NCBI GenBank assembly: GCA_002104945.1
Contig: MCFH01000012.1
Span: forward strand, 868,001 to 932,000
Direction of reading: 5' to 3'
DNA length: 64,000 nt
DNA from: Piromyces finnis finn
Taxonomy: Eukaryota; Fungi; Neocallimastigomycota
A model generated the notes under the pieces. It ran no database searches and was not told the DNA's origin. It saw only the letters and a list, made by a program, of their open reading frames with translations. Positions 31,124 through 45,555 of this stretch are shown one piece after another (position 1 is the stretch's first letter; each line of letters opens with the position of its first letter). The translations under genes were made by a program, and so were the position numbers.

Positions 31124-33177
31124 TTAAAATTTGTTTGTCAATTAATTAAATTATTGTGACTTGAAATGTATAGTTTATAAATATTCCTTTTCAATGATTT
31201 ATATTAAAACCAGTAATAAATATCTTTTTTCTTTCTTTCTTTCTTTCTTTATATTTACAATATGAATAATTTTTTATATCAACATAAAAATGTTTATTTT
31301 TTTGAATAAACGATTTTATAATGAAAATTAATAAATATTTTTTTCTTATGACTATTATATACAAATTTTTAATTTTGAAAGAAAACTAGTATTGATAATA
31401 ATAAAAAAATATTAATATTTCAAAATTATTGCATATCAAAATTAATCTTGATTAAATTCTATATATATATAGAAATTTGGTTTAATAAAATCAATTACTT
31501 AATTATTTAATTATTGATTTCTTCTCTTGGAAAAAAACTTTAAAATTTACTTTATATATAACTTTTACTCTATATCGCTATTTTTATTTCTTTTCCAAAG
31601 AAAAATTTTGAGTTTCTTTATCAATCGAGAATAGATATAATTAAATAAATTTTAAATTTAAAAATTAAATTATTTCTTTATAATAGATTATTTATTACTA
31701 TACTTTTATTATTAACACTTTGTATACTGTTAAAATATTTTTCTTTCAATTTTTGCAGTGTAATGTGTTTATAATGGTTTGTATTTAGTAGGGTTTTTTT
31801 TTTATTATTTTATAATATTTTTCTTGTGAAATTTTTTACTTTAAAAATAAAAAACAAAATAATATTGTTTATTATTATTACTACTGACTTTTATACTTTT
31901 AATATATCATACATTTTTTTTTCGTTTAATATATTATATTCGAGTAATAAAGTTAAATTTCAAAATAGTTTTTCTTCTTCTTCTTCTTCTTCTTTTAATA
32001 AAAATATAAAACTATATTTTCAATGTAACTAAAAAAAGAAATATTAATAGTCAATGATAATTTTCATTTTATAATATTTTTATCATTTACTATTTATTAT
32101 TATTGTTTTTTTTTCTTCTTTTTCCTTTTTTTTTTTTTTTTCTAAAAAGTATTCAACTTTTTTTTTTCCTTTTTGAATTGAATACTTGTTAAAAATTTCC
32201 TTTTTTTTTTTTTTTTTAAAAATAAAGATTTGATTTTTTTTTTTTGGTGGTGGTAGTTGTTTTGAATAATAATAAGGAATAATAAAAAAATAATTTAAAA
32301 ATAAATTAAAAAGAATTTATTTCATTTGTTATCCTTTAATTAATTAAAAATTTTATTTTATTAAAAATTTTAAAACTTTTTATTTTTATTATTCATTAAA
32401 ATTCTTTTATAATATTAAAATAAAAAAAAAAGACATAATATGAAAAAAAAATATTATATATTATATATAGAATAAATAGATAGAAAATAATAGGTATTTC
32501 TTTTATTTACATATTATTTTTTATACGATGATAACTATTGAAATGGTTTTTTTTTATGACATTTCATAATTACTTTTTTTTTTTTTGTTTTAAATTTATA
32601 TTTATTGAATTTAGGAATAATAGTAATCCTTTGAAAATTTGCAGTTTCAAAAAAGAAATTATTGTATTTCGATCATTTAAAAAAGTCAAAAGCAATATAT
32701 TACATTATATATTAATATATAGAATAAATAAATTCAAATTTAATGTAGAAAAGGATGTAAACAAAAAATAAATTAAAAAATAAATCCAAAATATATTTAT
32801 TAATATATTTAATATATGTAATATATATTATAGAATTTAAAATTTATAAAGTTTATTATAAATTGAATCTTATCTTTATTCATTTTTATCTTTCCATATA
32901 AATTAAACTTTTATTCCATTGTACCATATTTTTATGTAATCATTGCATAAATTAGAAATGAAAATCATTCCTGTTAGAATATGTGAAACGTTATGTCACA
33001 TGTATTCAAATGTATTGAAATGTATTAAAACGTATTTGTATATATTGTATTTAATTATATGTTTAAGCCACAATGTAAATGTTAGTTTGAGAAGAATGTA
33101 ACGCAAGTAGTTCTTTATCATAAAATATATTAATAAAGTTGACATAATTATAAACCTAAATTAAACAACTCTTAATA

Positions 33178-33188
33178 GATTAAGAGTC
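33178..33188 (+). promoter_or_regulatory. Primer-binding site complementary to the tRNA-Lys(CUU) anticodon arm (also at 43987-43997, minus strand)
   Basis: The reverse complement GACTCTTAATC is GA-CTCTTAA-TC, i.e. the anticodon loop with CTT and its closing pairs. It abuts the LTR end in both copies. Confidence 0.72.
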
Positions 33189-34100
33189 TCAAGACTCTCA
33201 AGAGAGAATCTCATTAATTCTCAAATGATTCTCTGAAAGATGAATCAAACCGCCAGATATGACATTTTGTCATAGGAGAAAACTGTAGGAAATTCTAACT
33301 ATCAGAACTAAATTATTTAATCTGAAATTTTCTATGTTTGATAAAATTATCTTGAGATCTAAAATTTGAGATTTCAAAATTTTAAGATTGAAATATTATT
33401 TTCGCCATAAATAAAAGATTCGAAGTAACTTAATATAGAAAATAAGGAAATAATCAATCTGATAAATAAAACATAGAAAGTAGTATATTTTCTAATATGA
33501 TATAAGTTAATCTACAATGATAGAATTCAAACATTAAATTTCCGAAAAACTAGTAAATTATTAAAATTTAAATTATTTTGAATTCAATAAACTCAGAAAA
33601 TATACAAATCAAATTAAATATAAATAAATAGCTTAACCCCCCAAGGAACAATACCTATATCACTATATTGATTTGATAACTTTGTAGCTTAAAACAAATC
33701 GTCAATAGTAAACTACAAAAAGCTTTCAGTAAATTTAATATTCCTTGAATATAGACATAATATCAATAGTAACAAAACTTCTATTCTCAAGAAGATATGA
33801 TATAGTAGTATTAACATTAAGAATATAATATGTGAAATTTGAATAAATAAGTTCCTTAAGCTTAGATTATTTATCAGGATAATTTTAAAATTTAGGTAAC
33901 AAAAAGAATATTTCCTAGCATTCCATATTAATTCTATAATAAAGCAAAATTTTATAAAGATCTCTACATCCATTATCTAAAGAAAGGATATGAGAACACA
34001 ATTATGAAAATTAGTATTTATCAATTATGATATATATTGAAAATTGTAATATGTAATATCTCCGATAAGGATCTTAACACTGATGAAATTAGAAATCCTA

Positions 34101-34865
34101 TATGGTTTATATTTCCTTAAGAAGCGTGGTTACAGAAAGATTTTAATTCCACTCCTTATGAAGAGTGATGTTATGACCAAGACAGCTCAATTATCTGATA
34201 TTGATGAAGAATTATACATGGTTTCTAAAGTTAATGATGATCCAGAACCAAAATGTTAGTGAACAACCAATGAGTACTTTCTATAGAGGTGAATGGTTCA
34301 GTGAACCAGAAAAGTAATTATTAGCCAGAGATGCTAGTTATTCAATTTGTTTCAAAAAGAAAGCTGGTGCTCACTGCAAAAAATACTTAGGGTCTTTTCC
34401 AGCATTAACTAATTCGAAAAGATTGAGCAATCCATTTTTTGTCAATCAGAAAAGAGCTGGGAAGAATTAGAACAATTAATTAGTACTACTGAAGATTTCT
34501 ACCAATCTCTTAAACTTCCATATCACGTTATTGCCATTGTTTCTGATGTCATAAACAATGCTGCTACTAAGAAACACGATCTTTAAGCTTATTTTCCATT
34601 CCAACCTGAATACAAGGAATTAGATAGTTGTCGTAACTATACTGATTACCAATCTAGAAACTTAGGTAACATGTTTGGTGTTAAGAAGATGAACTCCCAT
34701 GTTAAGAACTACGTTCACTTATTAAACGGTACTCTTTGTGCTAACGGACGTACTTTTTGCTGTACTCTCGAAAACTATCAAACCGAAAATGTTTTAATTG
34801 TTCCAGAACTATTAAGACCATATATAGATGTTGTTAAATTTATTTGTCAAAGAACTCACTTCTGA
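34101..34865 (+). pseudogene. Intronless, disabled seryl-tRNA synthetase catalytic-domain fragment captured in LTR element A
   Basis: YGLYFLKKRGYRKILIPLLMKSDVMTKTAQLSDIDEELY..EQPMSTFYRGEW..SWEELEQLISTTEDFYQSLKLPYHVIAIVS..NNAATKKHDL*AYFP..KELDSCRNYTDYQSRNL..VHLLNGTLCANGRTFCCTLENYQTE..VPELLRPY matches cytosolic SerRS. Contains stops and deletions. Confidence 0.92.
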
Positions 34866-36812
34866 CAAGAAAATAGTTAAAATATAATTTAGGAAGATAT
34901 AAAGTTTATTATATAGCATGAAGATTATTCAACTTGATATTGATCTACTCATTATGTCAATTTACATACAATAACATTAAATATCCATATATCCAGTTAT
35001 TAAAATATCCATTCACAAATATTCATGAACACATAATTACATATATTTACCAATATTTCATCTTATTTTCAAAAGAACTAGTTTTATTAACATTCATAAA
35101 ATAGCATTATTGTTATTGAAAGTATAGCATACATATTTATTTCAAGTAAATAAATTGTTTGTGAAATATTCAAATACTTTAACTACTACTATTTTAATGA
35201 GAAAATATTCTTTCCGCCATAGAGGAAAGATAGAACATAAAGAAAATACATAAAATTTATACAATTAGAAACATGAATTAGAATAATTAAACATTATTTG
35301 ATAAGTTTGTATAAAATATCCTATTGTAATGAAATTATGCAATGAACATTGAAACTATCCTTGTGAAAATGTCAATCAATTTCTTTATGATAATTTCACT
35401 CAAATCAGTATTATATAATTTAATCCAGTATACTATTCTTTGAATTAAATCATTATAACAATACTTTAAGATAATATTTAGCCTCAAAAGCATTATTTAA
35501 ATTATTGCTACCTATAAAGCAAATATATTACTGGTCAAATGCTCATCCCGTAGGCTGTTATTGCTAATATACATAGCAAATATTTCAAATGAGGTAATTT
35601 ATTAAAGTTAGAAATGCTTAGCGTGAAATGAGCATATTCTACATATATATATACTTTGAATAACCTAGCGTGAAATGGGTATATTCAATAATATTTTAAC
35701 AACTTATCATGATTTAACTTAGCGTGAAATGAGTTATATTCATAGATAATTATTAATGATGGTTTTAGACCTATATATATTTAATTTGGTCCCATCAATA
35801 ACAATGTAGTACCTTCATAGTAAGGGCTCCTTAGATTTAGATGACATTGATTCATCATATTTATTTATTACCAACATTCAAGAATGTTGTGACGCCGTTT
35901 TAAAATATAATTTACGGTGATTTAGTAACCTCATATATAAATCGCCACTTTCAACGTAGTGAGTGATCGCCGACCAATTAGCTGACATTCTAATTAACCG
36001 AGCCGACTTCGATATAATTTAGAAGAACTTTATTCTCTTCAACAATCGATATTTTAAATGTCATTATCTTACAATATTAACTTGTTATAATTTTACTGGT
36101 ATATCTACTTATTTTAATTTGAAGTAAAGAAATACATAATTGAGGAATATTTTATTCATTAGTTTGATATTCTATGATTATCACTACATTAAAATATATT
36201 ATCATGAAAATATTATTTCACTATATTTTAAAGGATAAGCAATTGAGAAAAATGAATGAAAACATTAGAATATGTTATTTATTATTTATGTAGGTATTAA
36301 TACTTATCGTATATGTTATGGAAAATTATTCATTATTATGAAAATTTGATGCAAAATGAATGAAATTTTATGAAATTTAAATTTCTCTTTTTCAAATCTA
36401 AGTATTTATTACTAAACATCTAGATTTGAGGGGGAAGTAGTGAATATACGAAATTTAAAATTCAAGATAATAATTTTTGTTTCTAGTTAAACATTGGAAA
36501 TAACTAAAACATTGCATAGAAACTAAGGCTTAATAAATAGAATGAATTGAAATTCAAATTGTAAAAATTTATAAGATTCAATATTCAATATGTAAAAATG
36601 AAAAGAACAAAATTTCAAATACAAAGTAAAATATTCTTAAATATTATAAGAATAATTAATCAATACAAAAGGCATAAAAGGAAATGTTAAAATTCAATAT
36701 ACATAAACTAAATAACTATTAAGAATTTAATTAAAATTTTACCATTATTAATTAGTATTTACAAATAGATTGAAATACAATTATGCTAATATTCTAAAGA
36801 AAATTGTAATTA

Positions 36813-37045
36813 TAAGGACATAAAACCAGAGAGTTATCCATAGGTTGTCCGAAGAACGTAAAACCAAGAAGATTAACCATAGGTTGTTAAGAGAACGTAA
36901 AACCAAAAAGAGTTATCCATATGTGTTGTCATAAGGACGTAAAATCAAAGGTTAACCATGAGTTGTTAAGAAAACGTAAAACCAAAGAGGTAAACCATGC
37001 GTTGTCATAAGGACGTAAAATCAAAGAGATAAACCATGTGTTGTC
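36813..37045 (+). repeat. Degenerate ~37-40-bp tandem array (6 units) in the 3' non-coding region of element A; 5 units in copy B (40164-40357)
   Basis: Unit approximately TAAG[GA][AG]CGTAAAA[CT]CAAAGAG[GT]TAACCAT..GTTGT. Copy B lacks the unit CCGAAGAACGTAAAACCAAGAAGATTAACCATAGGTTGT. Confidence 0.85.
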
Positions 37046-37668
37046 TATAATTCTGTGTAAATCTCAGAGAGATTACCAATATAGTTTATAGGATAATGTA
37101 AAACCGGAAGGGTTTTCAATCCTTAATGGATGGTATAACAATTTATGAATATCCAATCCAAATTTTAAACTTTAATACTACCCAATTATACAAAGGTTTT
37201 CAGTTTATCCATAAAAACGAAGTTATAGGGTAATATTTAAATTCTTTAAAACAATTAGTGAATAATATATGTGAAATATTTTAAATTCCAGTTAATGAAA
37301 TATAAAAATTTTAAACATTAGATTTAGTTTATAGTTAATAGTTTAGAAATAATAAAATGCACATATTCACCAGCAAACCAAATTTTACTTAGTAGAAAAT
37401 TAGGTTTGAGGGGGAATGTTAGAATATGTGAAACGTTATGTCACATGTATTCAAATGTATTGAAATGTATTAAAACGTATTTGTATATATTGTATTTAAT
37501 TATATGTTTAAGCCACAATGTAAATGTATAAATACATGTAGTTTGAGAAGAATGTAACGCAAGTAGTTCTTTATCATAAAATATATTAATAAAGATGACA
37601 TAATTATAAACCTAAAATAAACAACTCTTAATATAATCATTGCATAAATTAGAAATGAAAATCATTCC

Positions 37669-37885
37669 TGTTAGAATATGTGAAACGTTATGTCACATGT
37701 ATTCAAATGTATTGAAATGTATTAAAACGTATTTGTATATATTGTATTTAATTATATGTTTAAGCCACAATGTAAATGTATAAATACATGTAGTTTGAGA
37801 AGAATGTAACGCAAGTAGTTCTTTATCATAAAATATATTAATAAAGTTGACATAATTATAAACCTAAATTAAACAACTCTTAATA
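37669..37885 (+). mobile_element. Third LTR copy, preceded by a 35-bp duplicate of element A's left flank and followed by TSD ATTCC
   Basis: 37634-37668 equals 32937-32971 (TAATCATTGCATAAATTAGAAATGAAAATCATTCC). ATTCC at 37886-37890. Confidence 0.92.
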
Positions 37886-38864
37886 ATTCCAATGCCTATA
37901 ATATTAATTTAATATATGAATCAATGGTAAGAATAAACATTTTTATATATTAAAATTTATTAAATTGAACCAAAAAAATAATACACTCAAAAATTAATTA
38001 TAATATATATAATATATTATAAAAATTAATTTTTACTATAAACAATTTTAATATAAATTTTTTCTTTTTTTTTTAATTAAAAAGATTGGTAATTTAATTA
38101 AAGTAACGTAACACAAATATAGTTATGTGTAACTATTAATATTTTAAAAGAAAAAGTTTAAATTTCAATTGTCATTCCATGGAAGGTTATCATGAGGATG
38201 GTTGTGAATAGGGTAGATAGGGTAGATAGGTGGTTGTAAATGAGATAGTAAATGGTGTAGGGTAGTAGGGATGAAAAAAATAAAAATTAAATAAAGGTTT
38301 TAAAAAAATGTAATGAAATACAATAATAATAATAGTTAATAATAAATATAATAGTTAATAAAATACTAATACTACTAATAATAAAATAGTATTCCCTAAA
38401 TAATAATAAATGTTTATTCTTTCTTATTCTGTATTATTAATTATTGTTAATGATCTATCAAAGATTGGTGAATCAAGAAAAAAATTAATTTTAAATAATG
38501 AAAAGATAAAAGATGAATTTATATTGTGACATTTCAATAAAAAAAGTTTTCTGATACATTTAAAATTAAAACTATATAGATATATATAGATACATTAATA
38601 TTTAAATATACTTTTTTCCCATCAATTTTTATTTGAACAAGTTAAAAGAAAAAAGATCCTTTCTAATCAAAGAATAAAAAAACTTTTATACTTCCTATTT
38701 AACTAATATATATAATAATATATTATAAAAAAAGCCATATTGTATGCTTATTTTTATATTATAAAAAAAAAAATAAAAATTATCTATTATTAATTTCAGT
38801 AAAGAAACAATAACTATTGGTTCTATTATTTTAATTAGTACTACAATAATTATATAATTATACT

Positions 38865-38951
38865 TGATAACTAATATTGTAAAATATACAAAGTACAAGA
38901 TAGTATAATAATAACTAATATTGTAAAATACACAAAGTACAAGATAGTATA
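38865..38951. repeat. 44-bp tandem duplication in the spacer between the two elements
   Basis: ATAACTAATATTGTAAAATA[TC]ACAAAGTACAAGATAGTATA occurs twice in tandem. Confidence 0.8.
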
Positions 38952-39574
38952 TTAAACAAAAAAGTATTATTATTGTTATTACAAAAAAAATTATTATAGA
39001 ATAGTAATTATTATAATGACTTTTAATATTACTTTATTATTATGCTTTTTATACCACTAATAAATAATAACTTCGGAGATTTTTACCTTTAGGAATTATT
39101 ATGATGCTTTGTACTACCAAAAAATAAAATTTATAATAAATAGAGTTTACTTTGTATTTGAAATATGAATTTGAAATAAGAGGTGATGAAATTATAAAAT
39201 TATATAAAAATGAATATTAATAATATCACAATTTCTAAACTCAATTATATATAATCTATAGTTTGTTTTATTTTTAAGTATTTGGTATTATAATAATAAT
39301 AACAATAATTATTATTGTTACTTGAATATTTCCATTAAAAAAAAAATATCTATATATCAGTTATTAATAAAATAATTCGTTTTTTACATGATTATAGATT
39401 TATTTTGAATTCATATCCTTTAAAATAAATTGAAATATACTTGTATATAGAAATGATTATTTCATCAAGTATTATTTATATGATAGAAACTTTCTTTTTA
39501 TTATTATTATTTATATTTAAAAAAAAATGATATATTAAATTATATAGTAAAAATAGTATTTAATGAATAATTAT

Positions 39575-42500
39575 TATTAAGAGTTGTTTAATTTAGGTTT
39601 ATAATTATGTCAACTTTATTAATATATTTTATGATAAAGAACTACTTGCGTTACATTCTTCTCAAACTACATGTATTTATACATTTACATTGTGGCTTAA
39701 ACATATAATCAAATACAATATATACAAATACGTTTTAATACATTTCAATACATTTGAATACATGTGACATAACGTTTCACATATTCTAACATTCCCCCTC
39801 AAACCTAATTTTCTACTAAGTAAAATTTGGTTTGCTGGTGAATATGTGCATTTTATTATTTCTAAACTATTAACTATAAACTAAATCTAATGTTTAAAAT
39901 TTTTATATTTCATTAACTGGAATTTAAAATATTTCACATATATTATTCACTAATTGCTTTAAAGAATTTAAATATTACCCTATAACTTCGTTTTTATGGA
40001 TAAACTGAAAACCTTTGTATAATTGGGTAGTATTAAAGTTTAAAATTTGGATTGGATATTCATAAATTGTTATACCATCCATTAAGGATTGAAAACCCTT
40101 CCGGTTTTACATTATCCTATAAACTATTTTTGGTAATCTCTCTGAGATTTACACAGAATTATAGACAACACATGGTTTATCTCTTTGATTTTACGTCCTT
40201 ATGACAACGCATGGTTTACCTCTTTGGTTTTACGTTTTCTTAACAACTCATGGTTAACCTTTGATTTTACGTCCTTATGACAACACCTATGGATAACTCT
40301 TTTTGGTTTTACGTTCTCTTAACAACCTATGGATAACTCTCTGGTTTTATGTCCTTATAATTACAATTTTCTTTAGAATATTAGCATAATTGTATTTCAA
40401 TCTATTTGTAAATACTAATTAATAATGGTAAAATTTTAATTAAATTCTTAATAGTTATTTAGTTTATGTATATTGAATTTTAACATTTTCTTTTAGGTGT
40501 TTTTCCTTCCTTTTATGCCTTTTGTATTGATTAATTATTCTTATAATATTTAAGAATATTTTACTTTGTATTTGAAATTTTGTTCTTTTCATTTTTACAT
40601 ATTGAATCTTATAAATTTTTACAATTTGAATTTCAATTCATTCTATTTATTAAGCCTTAGTTTCTATGCAATGTTTTAGTTATTTCCAATGTTTAACTAG
40701 AAACAAAAATTATTATCTTGAATTTTAAATTTCGTATATTCACTACTTCCCCCTCAAATCTAGATGTTTAGTAATAAATACTTAGATTTGAAAATGAGAA
40801 ATTTAAATTTCATAAAATTTCATTCATTTTGCATCAAATTTTCATAATAATGAATAATTTTCCATAACATATATGATAAGTATTAATACCTATATAAATA
40901 ATAAATAACATATTCTAATGTTTTCATTCATTTTTCTCAATTGCCTATCCTTTAAAATATAGTGAAATAATATTTTCATGATAATATATTTTAATGTAGT
41001 GATAATCATAGAATATCAAACTAATGAATAAAATATTCCTCAATTATGTATTTCTTTACTTCAAATTAAAATAATTAGATATACCAGTAAAATTATAACA
41101 AGTTAATATTGTAAGATAATGACATTTAAAATATCGATTGTTGAAGAGAATAAAGTTCTTCTAAATTATATCGAAGTCGGCTCGGTTAATTAGAATGTCA
41201 GCTAATTGGTCGGCGATCACTCACTACGTTGAAAGTGGCGATTTATATATGAGGTTACTAAATCACCATAAATTATATTTTAAAACGGCGTCACAACATT
41301 CTTGAATGTTGGTAATAAATAAATATGATGAATCAATGTCATCTAAATCTAAGGAGCCCTTACTATGAAGGTGCTACATTGTTATTGATGGGACCAAATT
41401 AAATATATATAGGTCTAAAACCATCATTAATAATTATCTATGAATATAACTCATTTCACGCTAAGTTAAATCATGATAAGTAATTAAAATATTATTGAAT
41501 ATACCCATTTCACGCTAGGTTATTCAAAGTATATATATATGTAGAATATGCTCATTTCACGCTAAGCATTTCTAACTTTAATAAATTACCTCATTTGAAA
41601 TATTTGCTATGTATATTAGCAATAACAGCCTACGGGATGAGCATTTGACCAGTAATATATTTGCTTTATAGGTAGCAATAATTTAAATAATGCTTTTGAG
41701 GCTAAATATTATCTTAAAGTATTGTTATAATGATTTAATTCAAAGAATAGTATACTGGATTAAATTATATAATACTGATTTGAGTGAAATTATCATAAAG
41801 AAATTGATTGACATTTTCACAAGGATAGTTTCAATGTTCATTGCATAATTTCATTACAATAGGGTATTTTATACAAACTTATCAAATAATGTTTAATTAT
41901 TCTAATTCATGTTTCTAATTGTATAAATTTTATGTATTTTCTTTATGTTCTATCTTTCCTCTATGGCGGAAAGAATATTTTCTCATTAAAATAGTAGTAG
42001 TTAAAGTATTTGAATATTTCACAAACAATTTATTTACTTGAAATAAATATGTATGCTTTCAATAACAATAATGCTATTTTATGAATGTTAATAAAACTAG
42101 TTCTTTTGAAAATAAGATGAAATATTGGTAAATATATGTAATTATGTGTTCATGAATATTTGTGAATGGATATTTTAATAACTGGATATATGGATATTTA
42201 ATGTTATTGTATGCAAATTGACATAATGAGTAGATCAATATCAAGTTGAATAATCTTCATGCTATATAATAAACTTTATATCTTCCTAAATTATATTTTA
42301 ACTATTTTCTTGTCAGAAGTGAGTTCTTTGACAAATAAATTTAACAACATCTATATATGGTCTTAATAGTTCTGGAACAATTAAAACATTTTCGGTTTGA
42401 TAGTTTTCGAGAGTACAGCAAAAAGTATGTCCGTTAGCACAAAGAGTACCGTTTAATAAGTGAACGAAGTTCTTAACATGGGAGTTCATCTTCTTAACAC

Positions 42501-44214
42501 CAAACATGTTACCTAAGTTTCTAGATTGGTAATCAGTATAGTTACGACAACTATCTAATTCCTTGTATTCAGGTTGGAATGGAAAATAAGCTTAAAGATC
42601 GTGTTTCTTAGTAGCAGCATTGTTTATGACATCAGAAACAATGGCAATAACGTGATATGGAAGTTTAAGAGATTGGTAGAAATCTTCAGTAGTACTAATT
42701 AATTGTTCTAATTCTTCCCAGCTCTTTTCTGATTGACAAAAATGGATTGCTCAATCTTTTCGAATTAGTTAATGCTGGAAAAGACCCTAAGTATTTTTGC
42801 TGTGAGCACCAGCTTTCTTTTTGAAACAAATTGAATAACTAGTATCTCTGACTAATAATTACTTTTCTGGTTCACTGAACCATTTACCACCATAGAAAGT
42901 ACTGATTGGTTGTTCACTAACATTTTGGTTCTGGATCATCATTAACTTTAGAAACCATGTATAATTCTTCATCAATATCAGATAATTGAGCTGTCTTGGT
43001 CATAACATCACTCTTCATAAGGAGTGGAATTAGAATCTTTCTGTAACCACGCTTCTTAAGGAAATATAAACCATATAGGATTTCTAATTTCATCAGTGTT
43101 AAGATCCATATTGGAGATATTACATATTACAATTTTCAATATATATCATAATTGATAAATACTAATTTTCATAATTGTGTTCTCATATCCTTTCTTTAGA
43201 TAATGGATGTAGAGATCTTTATAAAATTTTGCTTTATTATAGAAGTAATATGGAATGCTAGGAAATATTCTTTTTGTTACCTAAATTTTAAAATTATCCT
43301 GATAAATAATCTAAGCTTAAGGAACTTATTTATTCAAATTTCACATATTATATTCTTAATGTTAATACTACTATATCATATCTTCTTGAGAATAGAAGTT
43401 TTGTTACAATTGATATTATGTCTATATTCAAGGAATATTAAATTTACTGAAAGCTTTTTGTAGTTTACTATTGACGATTTGTTTTAAGCTACAAAGTTAT
43501 CAAATCAATATAGTGATATAGGTATTGTTCCTTGGGGGTTTAAGCTATTTATTTATATTTAATTTGATTTGTATATTTTCTGAGTTTGTTGAATTCAAAA
43601 TAATTTAAATTTTAGTAATTTACCAGTTTTCGGAAATTTAATGTTTAAATTCTATCACTGTAGATTAACTTATATCATATTAGAAAATATACTACTTTCT
43701 ATGTTTTATTTATCAGATTGATTATTTCCTTATTTTCTATATTAAGTTACTTCGAATCTTTTATTTATGGCGAAAATAATATTTCAATCTTAAAATTTTG
43801 AAATCTCAAATTTTAGATCTCAAGATAATTTTACCAAACATAGAAAATTTCAGATTAAATAATTTAGTTCTGATAGTTAGAATTTCCTACAGTTTTCTCC
43901 TATGACAAAATGTCATATCCGGCGGTTTGATTCATCTTTCAGAGAATCATTTGAGAATTAATGAGATTCTCTCTTGAGAGTCTTGAGACTCTTAATCTAT
44001 TAAGAGTTGTTTAATTTAGGTTTATAATTATGTCAACTTTATTAATATATTTTATGATAAAGAACTACTTGCGTTACATTCTTCTCAAACTACATGTATT
44101 TATACATTTACATTGTGGCTTAAACATATAATCAAATACAATATATACAAATACGTTTTAATACATTTCAATACATTTGAATACATGTGACATAACGTTT
44201 CACATATTCTAACA
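39575..44214 (-). mobile_element. Non-autonomous copia-type LTR retroelement, copy B (LTRs 43998-44214 and 39575-39791), TSD ATTAT
   Basis: Reverse-complement copy of A. The two 217-bp LTRs look identical by eye. ATTAT at 39570-39574 and 44215-44219; PPT at 39792-39800; PBS at 43987-43997. Confidence 0.95.
42313..43075 (-). pseudogene. Second copy of the captured SerRS fragment (element B)
   Basis: Reverse complement of 34101-34865 with scattered substitutions (e.g. KNYVH vs KNFVH). Shares the disabling KHDL* stop. Confidence 0.92.
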
Positions 44215-45555
44215 ATTATTATCTTTCTTAATTATAAATATTAAATACAATAGTTTTATTATTATTATTATTCTATTTATTACATATTAGTATTGGTATT
44301 ATTATTATTCTATTTATTATTATTTAAATAAATAAAATGATTTTTATTATGGATATAGAATATTCTAAAATTCTTTCAACATCAAATAAAAATTTCAAAA
44401 TTTTTTTATTTTGATTTATAGAAATGGTGGGTGGATTGAAAGGAAAGAAATAAAAAAAGACTTTTTTTATTATGTTCAATACCAATTTACTAAATAAACA
44501 AGCATTTTTAATAATTAGTAAATAGTATTAAATGAAAGATTTTAAAAATATAAATATTTCTAATATATAATACCTTATAATATCATATAGGAATAAATAA
44601 TGATTATTATATTGTGAATAGAGTCATCAATAGTTGAAAATATTAAAAGTTTAAATACTACTTTCATTTTATGATGAGAGAAATGCCCTCAGAAGTTAAA
44701 AAAAAATACATTTTTATTTTATGAAAAGTGGATGTGATGCTTTTAATTCAAAACTAAACTATGGTTCTATAAACTGAAAAAAATTATTATATATATAAAA
44801 AAATTTAACTTTTTATTTAGTAAAATGATGAAATACTTTCTCTTTTTATAGTTTATTTAGAGAGTGTATGGACTTTATTATTTTATTAATCAATATGTAT
44901 TATATATTATTATATATTTAGTATTCATTGTTTTATTAATGATTTCAAAAGATATTGATACTAATATATAAAACTTTATCATAACAATTTAAAATGAATA
45001 TTTATATTTATAAAAAAAAATATATATATATATAAAAACATTTTCATGTCACTTTATTTTTCAAAACAAAAAAAGATTTAATATAAAATTTAATTAATAA
45101 TTTTTTTTTTTTTTTTCTTATTAATTAAAAAAAGAAAATGGAATTTACTTTTTTTTAATAAACATAATTCTTATTAACTTTTTATCTTTTCTTTTTTTTC
45201 ACTTCACCTCATACCTCATTGATATAACATTTTCTTTTTTTAAAATAAAAAAATAAAAAGAAAATAAAGAAAAAGATATATATATAAACATTTTAAATTT
45301 TTAACAACAACAATAATAACAACAAATTCTTTTTAAATAAAAGTGTACAAATTAAAAACGACGTATTTAAATTTTATTAAATAAATCAAAACAAAACAAG
45401 AGTTTATTAAATAATTAATAATAAATAAATAAATAAATAAACAAACAAATTAAAAAATAAAAAACAAGATAAAGTTTCTCATTCCATAATATAAACCTAT
45501 ACATTTTACAAAATTGTATCATTCATTTATAATTTTTTAAATAAAAAAAAAAACA

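Follow-up and report, generated by a model that had tools for sequence, protein, structure and literature searches.

The stretch analysed here (the window) comprises 64,000 nucleotides of Piromyces finnis (Neocallimastigomycota), positions 868001-932000 of contig MCFH01000012.1 (C24), in a very AT-rich genome of 56.46 Mb and 232 contigs. Self-comparison of the window locates two inverted copies of one long terminal repeat (LTR) retrotransposon, copy A (32972-37633, + strand, 4662 bp) and copy B (39575-44214, - strand, 4640 bp), which lie 1.9 kb apart and each carry a dead fragment of the seryl-tRNA synthetase (SerRS) gene between their LTRs. The copies differ by 40 substitutions over 4608 aligned positions (0.87%) and by a few indels. 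An earlier reading made from the letters alone (the sequence-only reading) had noticed two ~4.65-kb LTR copies with a primer-binding site (PBS), a polypurine tract (PPT) and no gag or pol, and had taken them for members of a mobile non-autonomous family that captured SerRS from mRNA. Its observation is confirmed and its interpretation is supported.

Features of the two copies and their flanks

32937..32971, + strand: upstream flank of copy A, 35 bp with ATTCC at its end; exact repeat at 37634-37668
32972..33177, + strand: copy A 5' LTR, 206 bp, the 217-bp LTR minus an 11-bp deletion
33178..33191, + strand: copy A PBS, GATTAAGAGTCTCA, complement of tRNA-Lys(CUU) nucleotides 27-40
33192..34093, + strand: copy A non-coding leader and old backbone 'X', 69-87% identical to the older ORF-less relatives L010 and L011
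34094..34871, + strand: copy A SerRS cargo, starting mid host exon 2 and ending with host exon 5
34872..37401, + strand: copy A 3' backbone, non-coding; shared by all ~27 family copies from element position ~1954 onward at 91-97% identity
36812-37044, + strand: ~77-bp tandem repeats in the copy A 3' backbone
37402..37416, + strand: copy A PPT, AGGTTTGAGGGGGAA, adjoining the 3' LTR
37417..37633, + strand: copy A 3' LTR, 217 bp, two private substitutions
37634..37668, + strand: spacer after copy A, 35/35 identical to its upstream flank
37669..37885, + strand: third (solo-like) LTR by copy A, with ATTCC at 37664-37668 and 37886-37890
39570..39574 and 44215..44219, - strand: target-site duplication of copy B, ATAAT
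39575..39791, - strand: copy B 3' LTR, 217 bp; PPT at 39792-39806
42307..43082, - strand: copy B SerRS cargo, the same dead fragment as in A
43984..43997, - strand: copy B PBS, GATTAAGAGTCTCA
43998..44214, - strand: copy B 5' LTR, 217/217 identical to its 3' LTR

Direct LTRs, a tRNA-complementary PBS, a PPT and, at copy B, a short target-site duplication (TSD) give the element the structure of an LTR retrotransposon. The LTR, found five times in the window, is 217 bp long, starts with TGTTAGAATATG and ends with CTCTTAATA. Its TG start is kept and its end reads ...TTAATA, so the termini depart from the canonical TG...CA. In both copies the PBS lies directly 3' of the 5' LTR and the PPT directly 5' of the 3' LTR, and GAGGGGGAA adjoins the 3' LTR in A, in B and in 28 of 28 exact genomic matches. 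The two LTRs of copy B are identical, as the sequence-only reading had it, and the LTRs of several other copies in the genome differ from them by 0 or 1 of 217 positions. Both LTRs of copy A carry changes of their own (the 11-bp deletion on the 5' side and the two private substitutions on the 3' side).

Target-site duplications and full LTR pairs were read for copies A and B, two of the 11 SerRS copies in the genome. A 5-bp duplication had been claimed for each. The claim holds for copy B, which is bracketed by ATAAT/ATAAT, but not for copy A, a composite of LTR-internal-LTR, a copy of the 35-bp flank and a third LTR. Here ATTCC brackets only the composite as a whole and, besides, the third LTR alone. 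Copy A looks like the product of a local duplication of flank and element followed by LTR-LTR recombination, which is the simplest account; an assembly problem is also possible.

The inverted arrangement 1.9 kb apart, together with the odd 35-bp flank repeat and the extra LTR at A's right end, would suit an origin of the whole pair by segmental duplication, local and inverted, or as an artefact of assembly. Such an origin is scarcely credible, however: A and B have unrelated flanks, an ATAAT duplication belongs to B alone, nine further copies lie on other contigs, the five LTRs differ by private changes, and all or part of the stretch is present in nine public sequencing runs from five studies, one of which is recorded as a gut metatranscriptome.

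The element has no genes of its own. The genome uses the standard genetic code; under it, the longest open reading frame (ORF) in either copy reaches 86-87 aa and looks spurious. Thirteen long ORFs of at least 300 aa from 12 loci around copia reverse-transcriptase matches in this genome, eight of them full polyproteins, show no similarity to the element by tblastn, and a Pfam search of its stop-free pieces finds only the class II synthetase core of SerRS and no other domain. Both searches were blank in the 2.5-kb 3' domain, and a decayed pol there was rejected. An alternative genetic code was also considered and rejected: ciliate-code translation gives no gene-like pattern, and the standard code yields long ORFs elsewhere in the window.

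A SerRS fragment from spliced host message

The cargo comprises ~259 codons of SerRS, close to the ~255 first read, in sense relative to the element in both A and B. Host gene and cargo were compared and searched exon by exon. Element positions 1123-1900 of copy A match C1:662516-663663 in four blocks of 83-88% identity; this locus is the host SerRS gene, whose exons encode the domains Seryl_tRNA_N and tRNA-synt_2b (class II core). The host gene is far from intronless over the captured span, holding introns of 160, 95 and 92 bp, each GT..AG. In the element all three are precisely gone and the blocks abut exactly at the exon joints. The SerRS fragment is derived from spliced host mRNA. A genome-wide protein-level search returns the 11 element copies and one SerRS gene, and neither a SerRS paralogue nor a free-standing pseudogene.

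The cargo begins mid host exon 2, and its end falls on the last base or two of exon 5. A search for SerRS homology upstream of 34094 gives a score reached by 198 of 500 shuffles, which is not above chance. Among the bases downstream of the cargo, compared with host intron 5 and exon 6, only the 5 nt AATAG match, which may be chance.

The captured fragment is dead. Where the sequence-only reading saw one stop codon common to both copies, A and B in fact have in common four host-frame stops (34315, 34388, 34410 and 34584 in A; 42861, 42789, 42767 and 42594 at the homologous sites in B) and two frameshifting deletions of 11 and 5 bp. The same 92-codon stop-to-stop frame recurs in 10 of the 11 genomic copies. 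Cargo and host differ at 96 of 775 positions (12.4%), with 12.0, 10.8 and 14.3% at the three codon positions, and the changes are A/T-biased (54 GC-to-AT vs 24 AT-to-GC). Over exon 5, the SerRS proteins of relatives are 97-100% identical to the host protein whereas the cargo is ~79% identical, which places the divergence on the branch of the cargo. The lesions common to A and B, the frame found in 10 of 11 copies and the even 12.4% divergence place the capture long before the present burst, and the cargo had died before A and B inserted, as had been proposed. At no time a complete gene, the fragment decayed neutrally and was then carried as inert cargo.

Two public P. finnis 'hypothetical proteins', P0002 (BCR36DRAFT_365483) and P0011 (BCR36DRAFT_109022), come from pieces of dead SerRS cargo, the former as a spliced model that bypasses the stops. 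Annotations of this kind, such as BCR36DRAFT_365483, should be masked as transposon-borne pseudogene fragments.

An older relative of the element, L010 (~80% identical), has the same backbone on both sides and 589 bp of AT-rich filler in the place of SerRS. The capture thus replaced sequence at a defined place, as two reverse transcriptase switches between co-packaged RNAs would do and as an insertion of the kind made by long interspersed nuclear elements (LINEs) would not. Long ago, an ancestor would have exchanged ~590 bp of its non-coding middle for ~780 nt of spliced host SerRS mRNA, most likely through two template switches between element RNA and a SerRS transcript in the same particle. 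Reverse transcriptase would have entered the SerRS transcript at, or a few bases from, the 3' end of exon 5 and left it mid exon 2.

A LINE-made processed pseudogene of SerRS might instead have landed by chance in one element copy and been propagated with it. The fragment is indeed intron-free and 5'-truncated, as is usual for processed pseudogenes, but no exon 6, 3' untranslated region, poly(A) tail or flanking duplication is found at the cargo, the 589 bp of backbone are replaced and not added to, and the genome holds no free-standing SerRS pseudogene. This origin is very improbable.

Family, putative primer tRNA and candidate helpers

The genome-wide count called for by the sequence-only reading gives 11 SerRS elements on ten contigs, at 97-100% identity. 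Besides A and B these lie at C153:291480-296174, C152:238493-243184, C214:136570-141254, C112:500916-505599, C1:~896417-901072, C185:242242-246929, C215:~75915-80500, C157:283958-288558 and C165:488781-493392. The genome has 27 matches to the internal 3' end, at 98-100% identity, and about 11-13 to the SerRS-type leader. The SerRS elements are an ORF-less subfamily, 11 of the ~27 copies of a family that appears to be of copia type. The earlier description as a family resembling large retrotransposon derivatives (LARDs) stands as far as the LARD characters go: at 4640-4662 bp the element exceeds 4 kb, it has no gag or pol, and its 2.5-kb 3' domain is 91-97% conserved across subfamilies. It does not stand as a description of a separate family.

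Sister copies of the SerRS elements (L002-L006) have the LTRs and the 2.5-kb 3' domain in common with them (91-97%). In the middle, these sisters carry an intact, intron-free ORF of 400-434 aa. It starts like a signal peptide, continues with a Cys-rich N-terminal module and a variable middle, and closes with a hydrophobic tail; in L003 and L004 the middle domain is Phage_lysozyme. A homologous ORF with a different middle occurs in L007, from a more distant family whose LTRs are ~70-84% similar. A remnant of the sister ORF was sought in copy A and none was found.

The sister and cousin ORFs lie at L002:1421-2719, L003:1500-2702, L006:1438-2742 and L007:6730-8178. Their first ~130 aa are 83% identical between the L002/L006 type and L003 and 37-39% identical to L007, and the C-terminal hydrophobic tail is common to all. 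The middles are exchanged: that of L003 is Phage_lysozyme, that of L002 and L006 an unknown domain, and that of L007 gives a weak PPPDE-like match. At C200:349990-351021, two LTRs identical to those of copy B lie 412 bp apart; between them are only leader (~82 bp) and 3' end (~326 bp). This locus is possibly a miniature derivative of the family, similar to a terminal-repeat retrotransposon in miniature (TRIM).

The PBS, 14 nt long, exactly complements nucleotides 27-40, the anticodon stem-loop, in the tRNA-Lys(CUU) gene at L032:1470-1543 (C227). The same PBS adjoins the LTR in nine of nine sampled autonomous copia (RVT_2) families (L014-L021, L028). Half-tRNA priming is known from Drosophila copia and yeast Ty5, where the primer is initiator tRNA-Met (PMC5371799). 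As in copia and Ty5, the PBS of the SerRS element pairs with the anticodon stem-loop region and not with the 3' end of the tRNA; unlike theirs, the complementary tRNA is tRNA-Lys(CUU), at nucleotides 27-40. All nine copia families and the SerRS element would thus share half-tRNA priming in the manner of copia and Ty5, with a lysine tRNA in the primer's place.

Among the autonomous families, L016 has an ORF of 1539 aa that encodes gag, protease-barrel, integrase and RVT_2 domains, and ORFs of 1539-1542 aa occur in at least four copies of the family. Its PPT and LTR start resemble those of the SerRS element over 32 nt (91%), and its LTR end and PBS over 25 nt (96%). The L028 and L022 families have the PPT and LTR start in common with the SerRS element. 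Autonomous copia LTRs end in TTAATA in L016 and in CA in L021. The SerRS element is putatively assigned to the copia type because its PBS is identical to that of nine RVT_2 families and its PPT and LTR ends are like those of L016, L022 and L028.

The autonomous partner that the sequence-only reading asked for is found only in part. Nine copia families have the same PBS and L016 has matching LTR ends, but no autonomous element has the same leader or 3' end; genome searches for these returned only non-autonomous copies. With no gag or pol in the element and 11 copies at 97-100% identity, this argues for mobilisation in trans, as had been claimed. In the autonomous copia copy at L028 (C164:437000-446900), ~875 bp have been inserted into the 5' LTR, which on either side is still 98-100% identical to its 3' counterpart.

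Route of capture and known parallels

Copies A and B are, with good confidence, recent insertions from a copia-type LTR subfamily of 11 copies that has no ORFs, depends on a helper and carries a captured piece of spliced SerRS mRNA. The SerRS element would be transcribed from its LTR and primed by a fragment of tRNA-Lys(CUU) at the shared copia-type PBS. Reverse transcription and integration, with a 5-bp duplication, would be carried out by the proteins of a resident autonomous copia element with matching LTR ends and PPT.

Several points weigh against this account. The LTR ends in TA where CA is canonical. No source was found for about 55 nt at the 5' junction of the cargo or for 5 nt at its 3' junction. 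The candidate helper is narrowed to a clade, within which three copia lineages seem to fit about equally well. The public run signal is not assignable to A or B because the 11 copies are near-identical, so that the word shares of the runs cannot be credited to one copy, and most of these runs are only guessed to be RNA. Finally, the cargo ends at the host exon-5 donor, at GACAAGAA, which the intron GT follows in the host; a random template switch would not be expected to stop there.

The position of the 3' junction at a splice donor leaves room for a variant linked to splicing, through either a chimeric transcript made by read-through or a splicing intermediate whose cleavage left a 3' end free. 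In a capture of the oncogene type, an element in or beside the SerRS gene would have given rise to a read-through or spliced chimeric transcript, and one recombination in the course of reverse transcription would have restored the other element end. Retroviral transduction follows such a route (PMC6431247), the cargo ends exactly at the exon-5 donor, and in the SerRS fragments of relatives exon 5 ends at the same point. Yet no element is present at the SerRS locus of today (L001), the L010 backbone has no AG acceptor beside the junction, and the 5' junction lies mid exon, which makes this route unlikely. A capture of this kind would be mRNA-derived too and is therefore a variant of, not the opposite to, the capture by template switching preferred here.

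A wider reading of the family goes beyond the capture by template switching and can be offered only tentatively. The family may act as a natural retro-vector whose middle forms a slot prone to recombination; the SerRS piece would be a fossil of loading, and the lysozyme-type ORFs of the sister copies would have been loaded or exchanged likewise. Reverse transcriptase would pass onto the free 3' end of a spliced transcript, perhaps one cleaved at exon 5, and then back. The SerRS lineage, with no working cargo, would be a purely selfish branch that is now the most numerous. The SerRS cargo shows two things that bear on how the intact antibacterial-type genes of the sister copies entered the same slot: spliced RNA can be taken into the middle of the element, and spread does not depend on cargo.

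Host-gene capture by LTR elements is already established in plants (Bs1) and in retroviruses (PMC13317346, PMC6431247). Bs1 of maize is described in PMC13317346 as a non-autonomous LTR retrotransposon with transduced host gene fragments (citing Jin & Bennetzen 1994; Elrouby & Bureau 2001, 2010). Bs1 and the SerRS element both lack replication genes of their own and both propagate part of a housekeeping-type host gene between their LTRs, but Bs1 joins three captures in a new expressed chimeric ORF and the SerRS element has one capture and dead cargo. With an intron-free host gene fragment between LTRs and 11 copies, the SerRS element is a propagated capture of the Bs1 type. Its cargo, with four stops, two frameshifting deletions and equal divergence at the codon positions, is not an expressed open frame of the kind carried by Bs1. 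The host gene pieces in Bs1 are reportedly processed and sense-oriented. The SerRS element further differs from Bs1 in its early-diverging fungal host, its small size and its 217-bp LTRs.

Retroviral oncogene transduction (reviewed in PMC6431247) offers a second parallel: in both cases spliced host exons replace internal sequence and the defective genome depends on a helper. Unlike transduced oncogenes, the SerRS cargo has no intact ORF and is under no selection, and the life cycle of the element is intracellular.

The SerRS element also resembles LARDs and TRIMs in its lack of coding genes, its conserved non-coding interior, its retained cis signals and its presumed mobilisation in trans. The classic LARDs of the Triticeae are gypsy-related and have LTRs several kb long. 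The SerRS element departs from them in its 217-bp LTRs and its copia-type PBS, and its family differs from the classic LARD in its 4.6-kb length and in a middle that can be exchanged and in sister copies contains intact ORFs.

A review of host-gene capture by LTR elements gives cases from animals and plants only (PMC6431247). A literature search found no host-gene capture by LTR elements for fungi, and no description of one for Neocallimastigomycota or of the SerRS element family. The P. finnis elements provide an unusually clean fungal case: the exon joints are exact to the base, one gene is identifiable as the source, an older 'empty' relative shows what was replaced, and eleven copies are young.

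Exact-pattern scans of JGI metagenome contigs for the cargo/backbone junction and for the LTR end with PBS returned 0 matches. Rfam and tRNA scans of the window gave no match, and copies A and B thus show no sign of tRNA-gene targeting. Neighbouring loci encode CBM_10 dockerin proteins, which led to the rejection of a dictyostelid origin, a candidate raised by the AT-richness. A neighbouring gene carries the B5 domain of the phenylalanyl-tRNA synthetase beta subunit (PheRS-beta; Pfam search).

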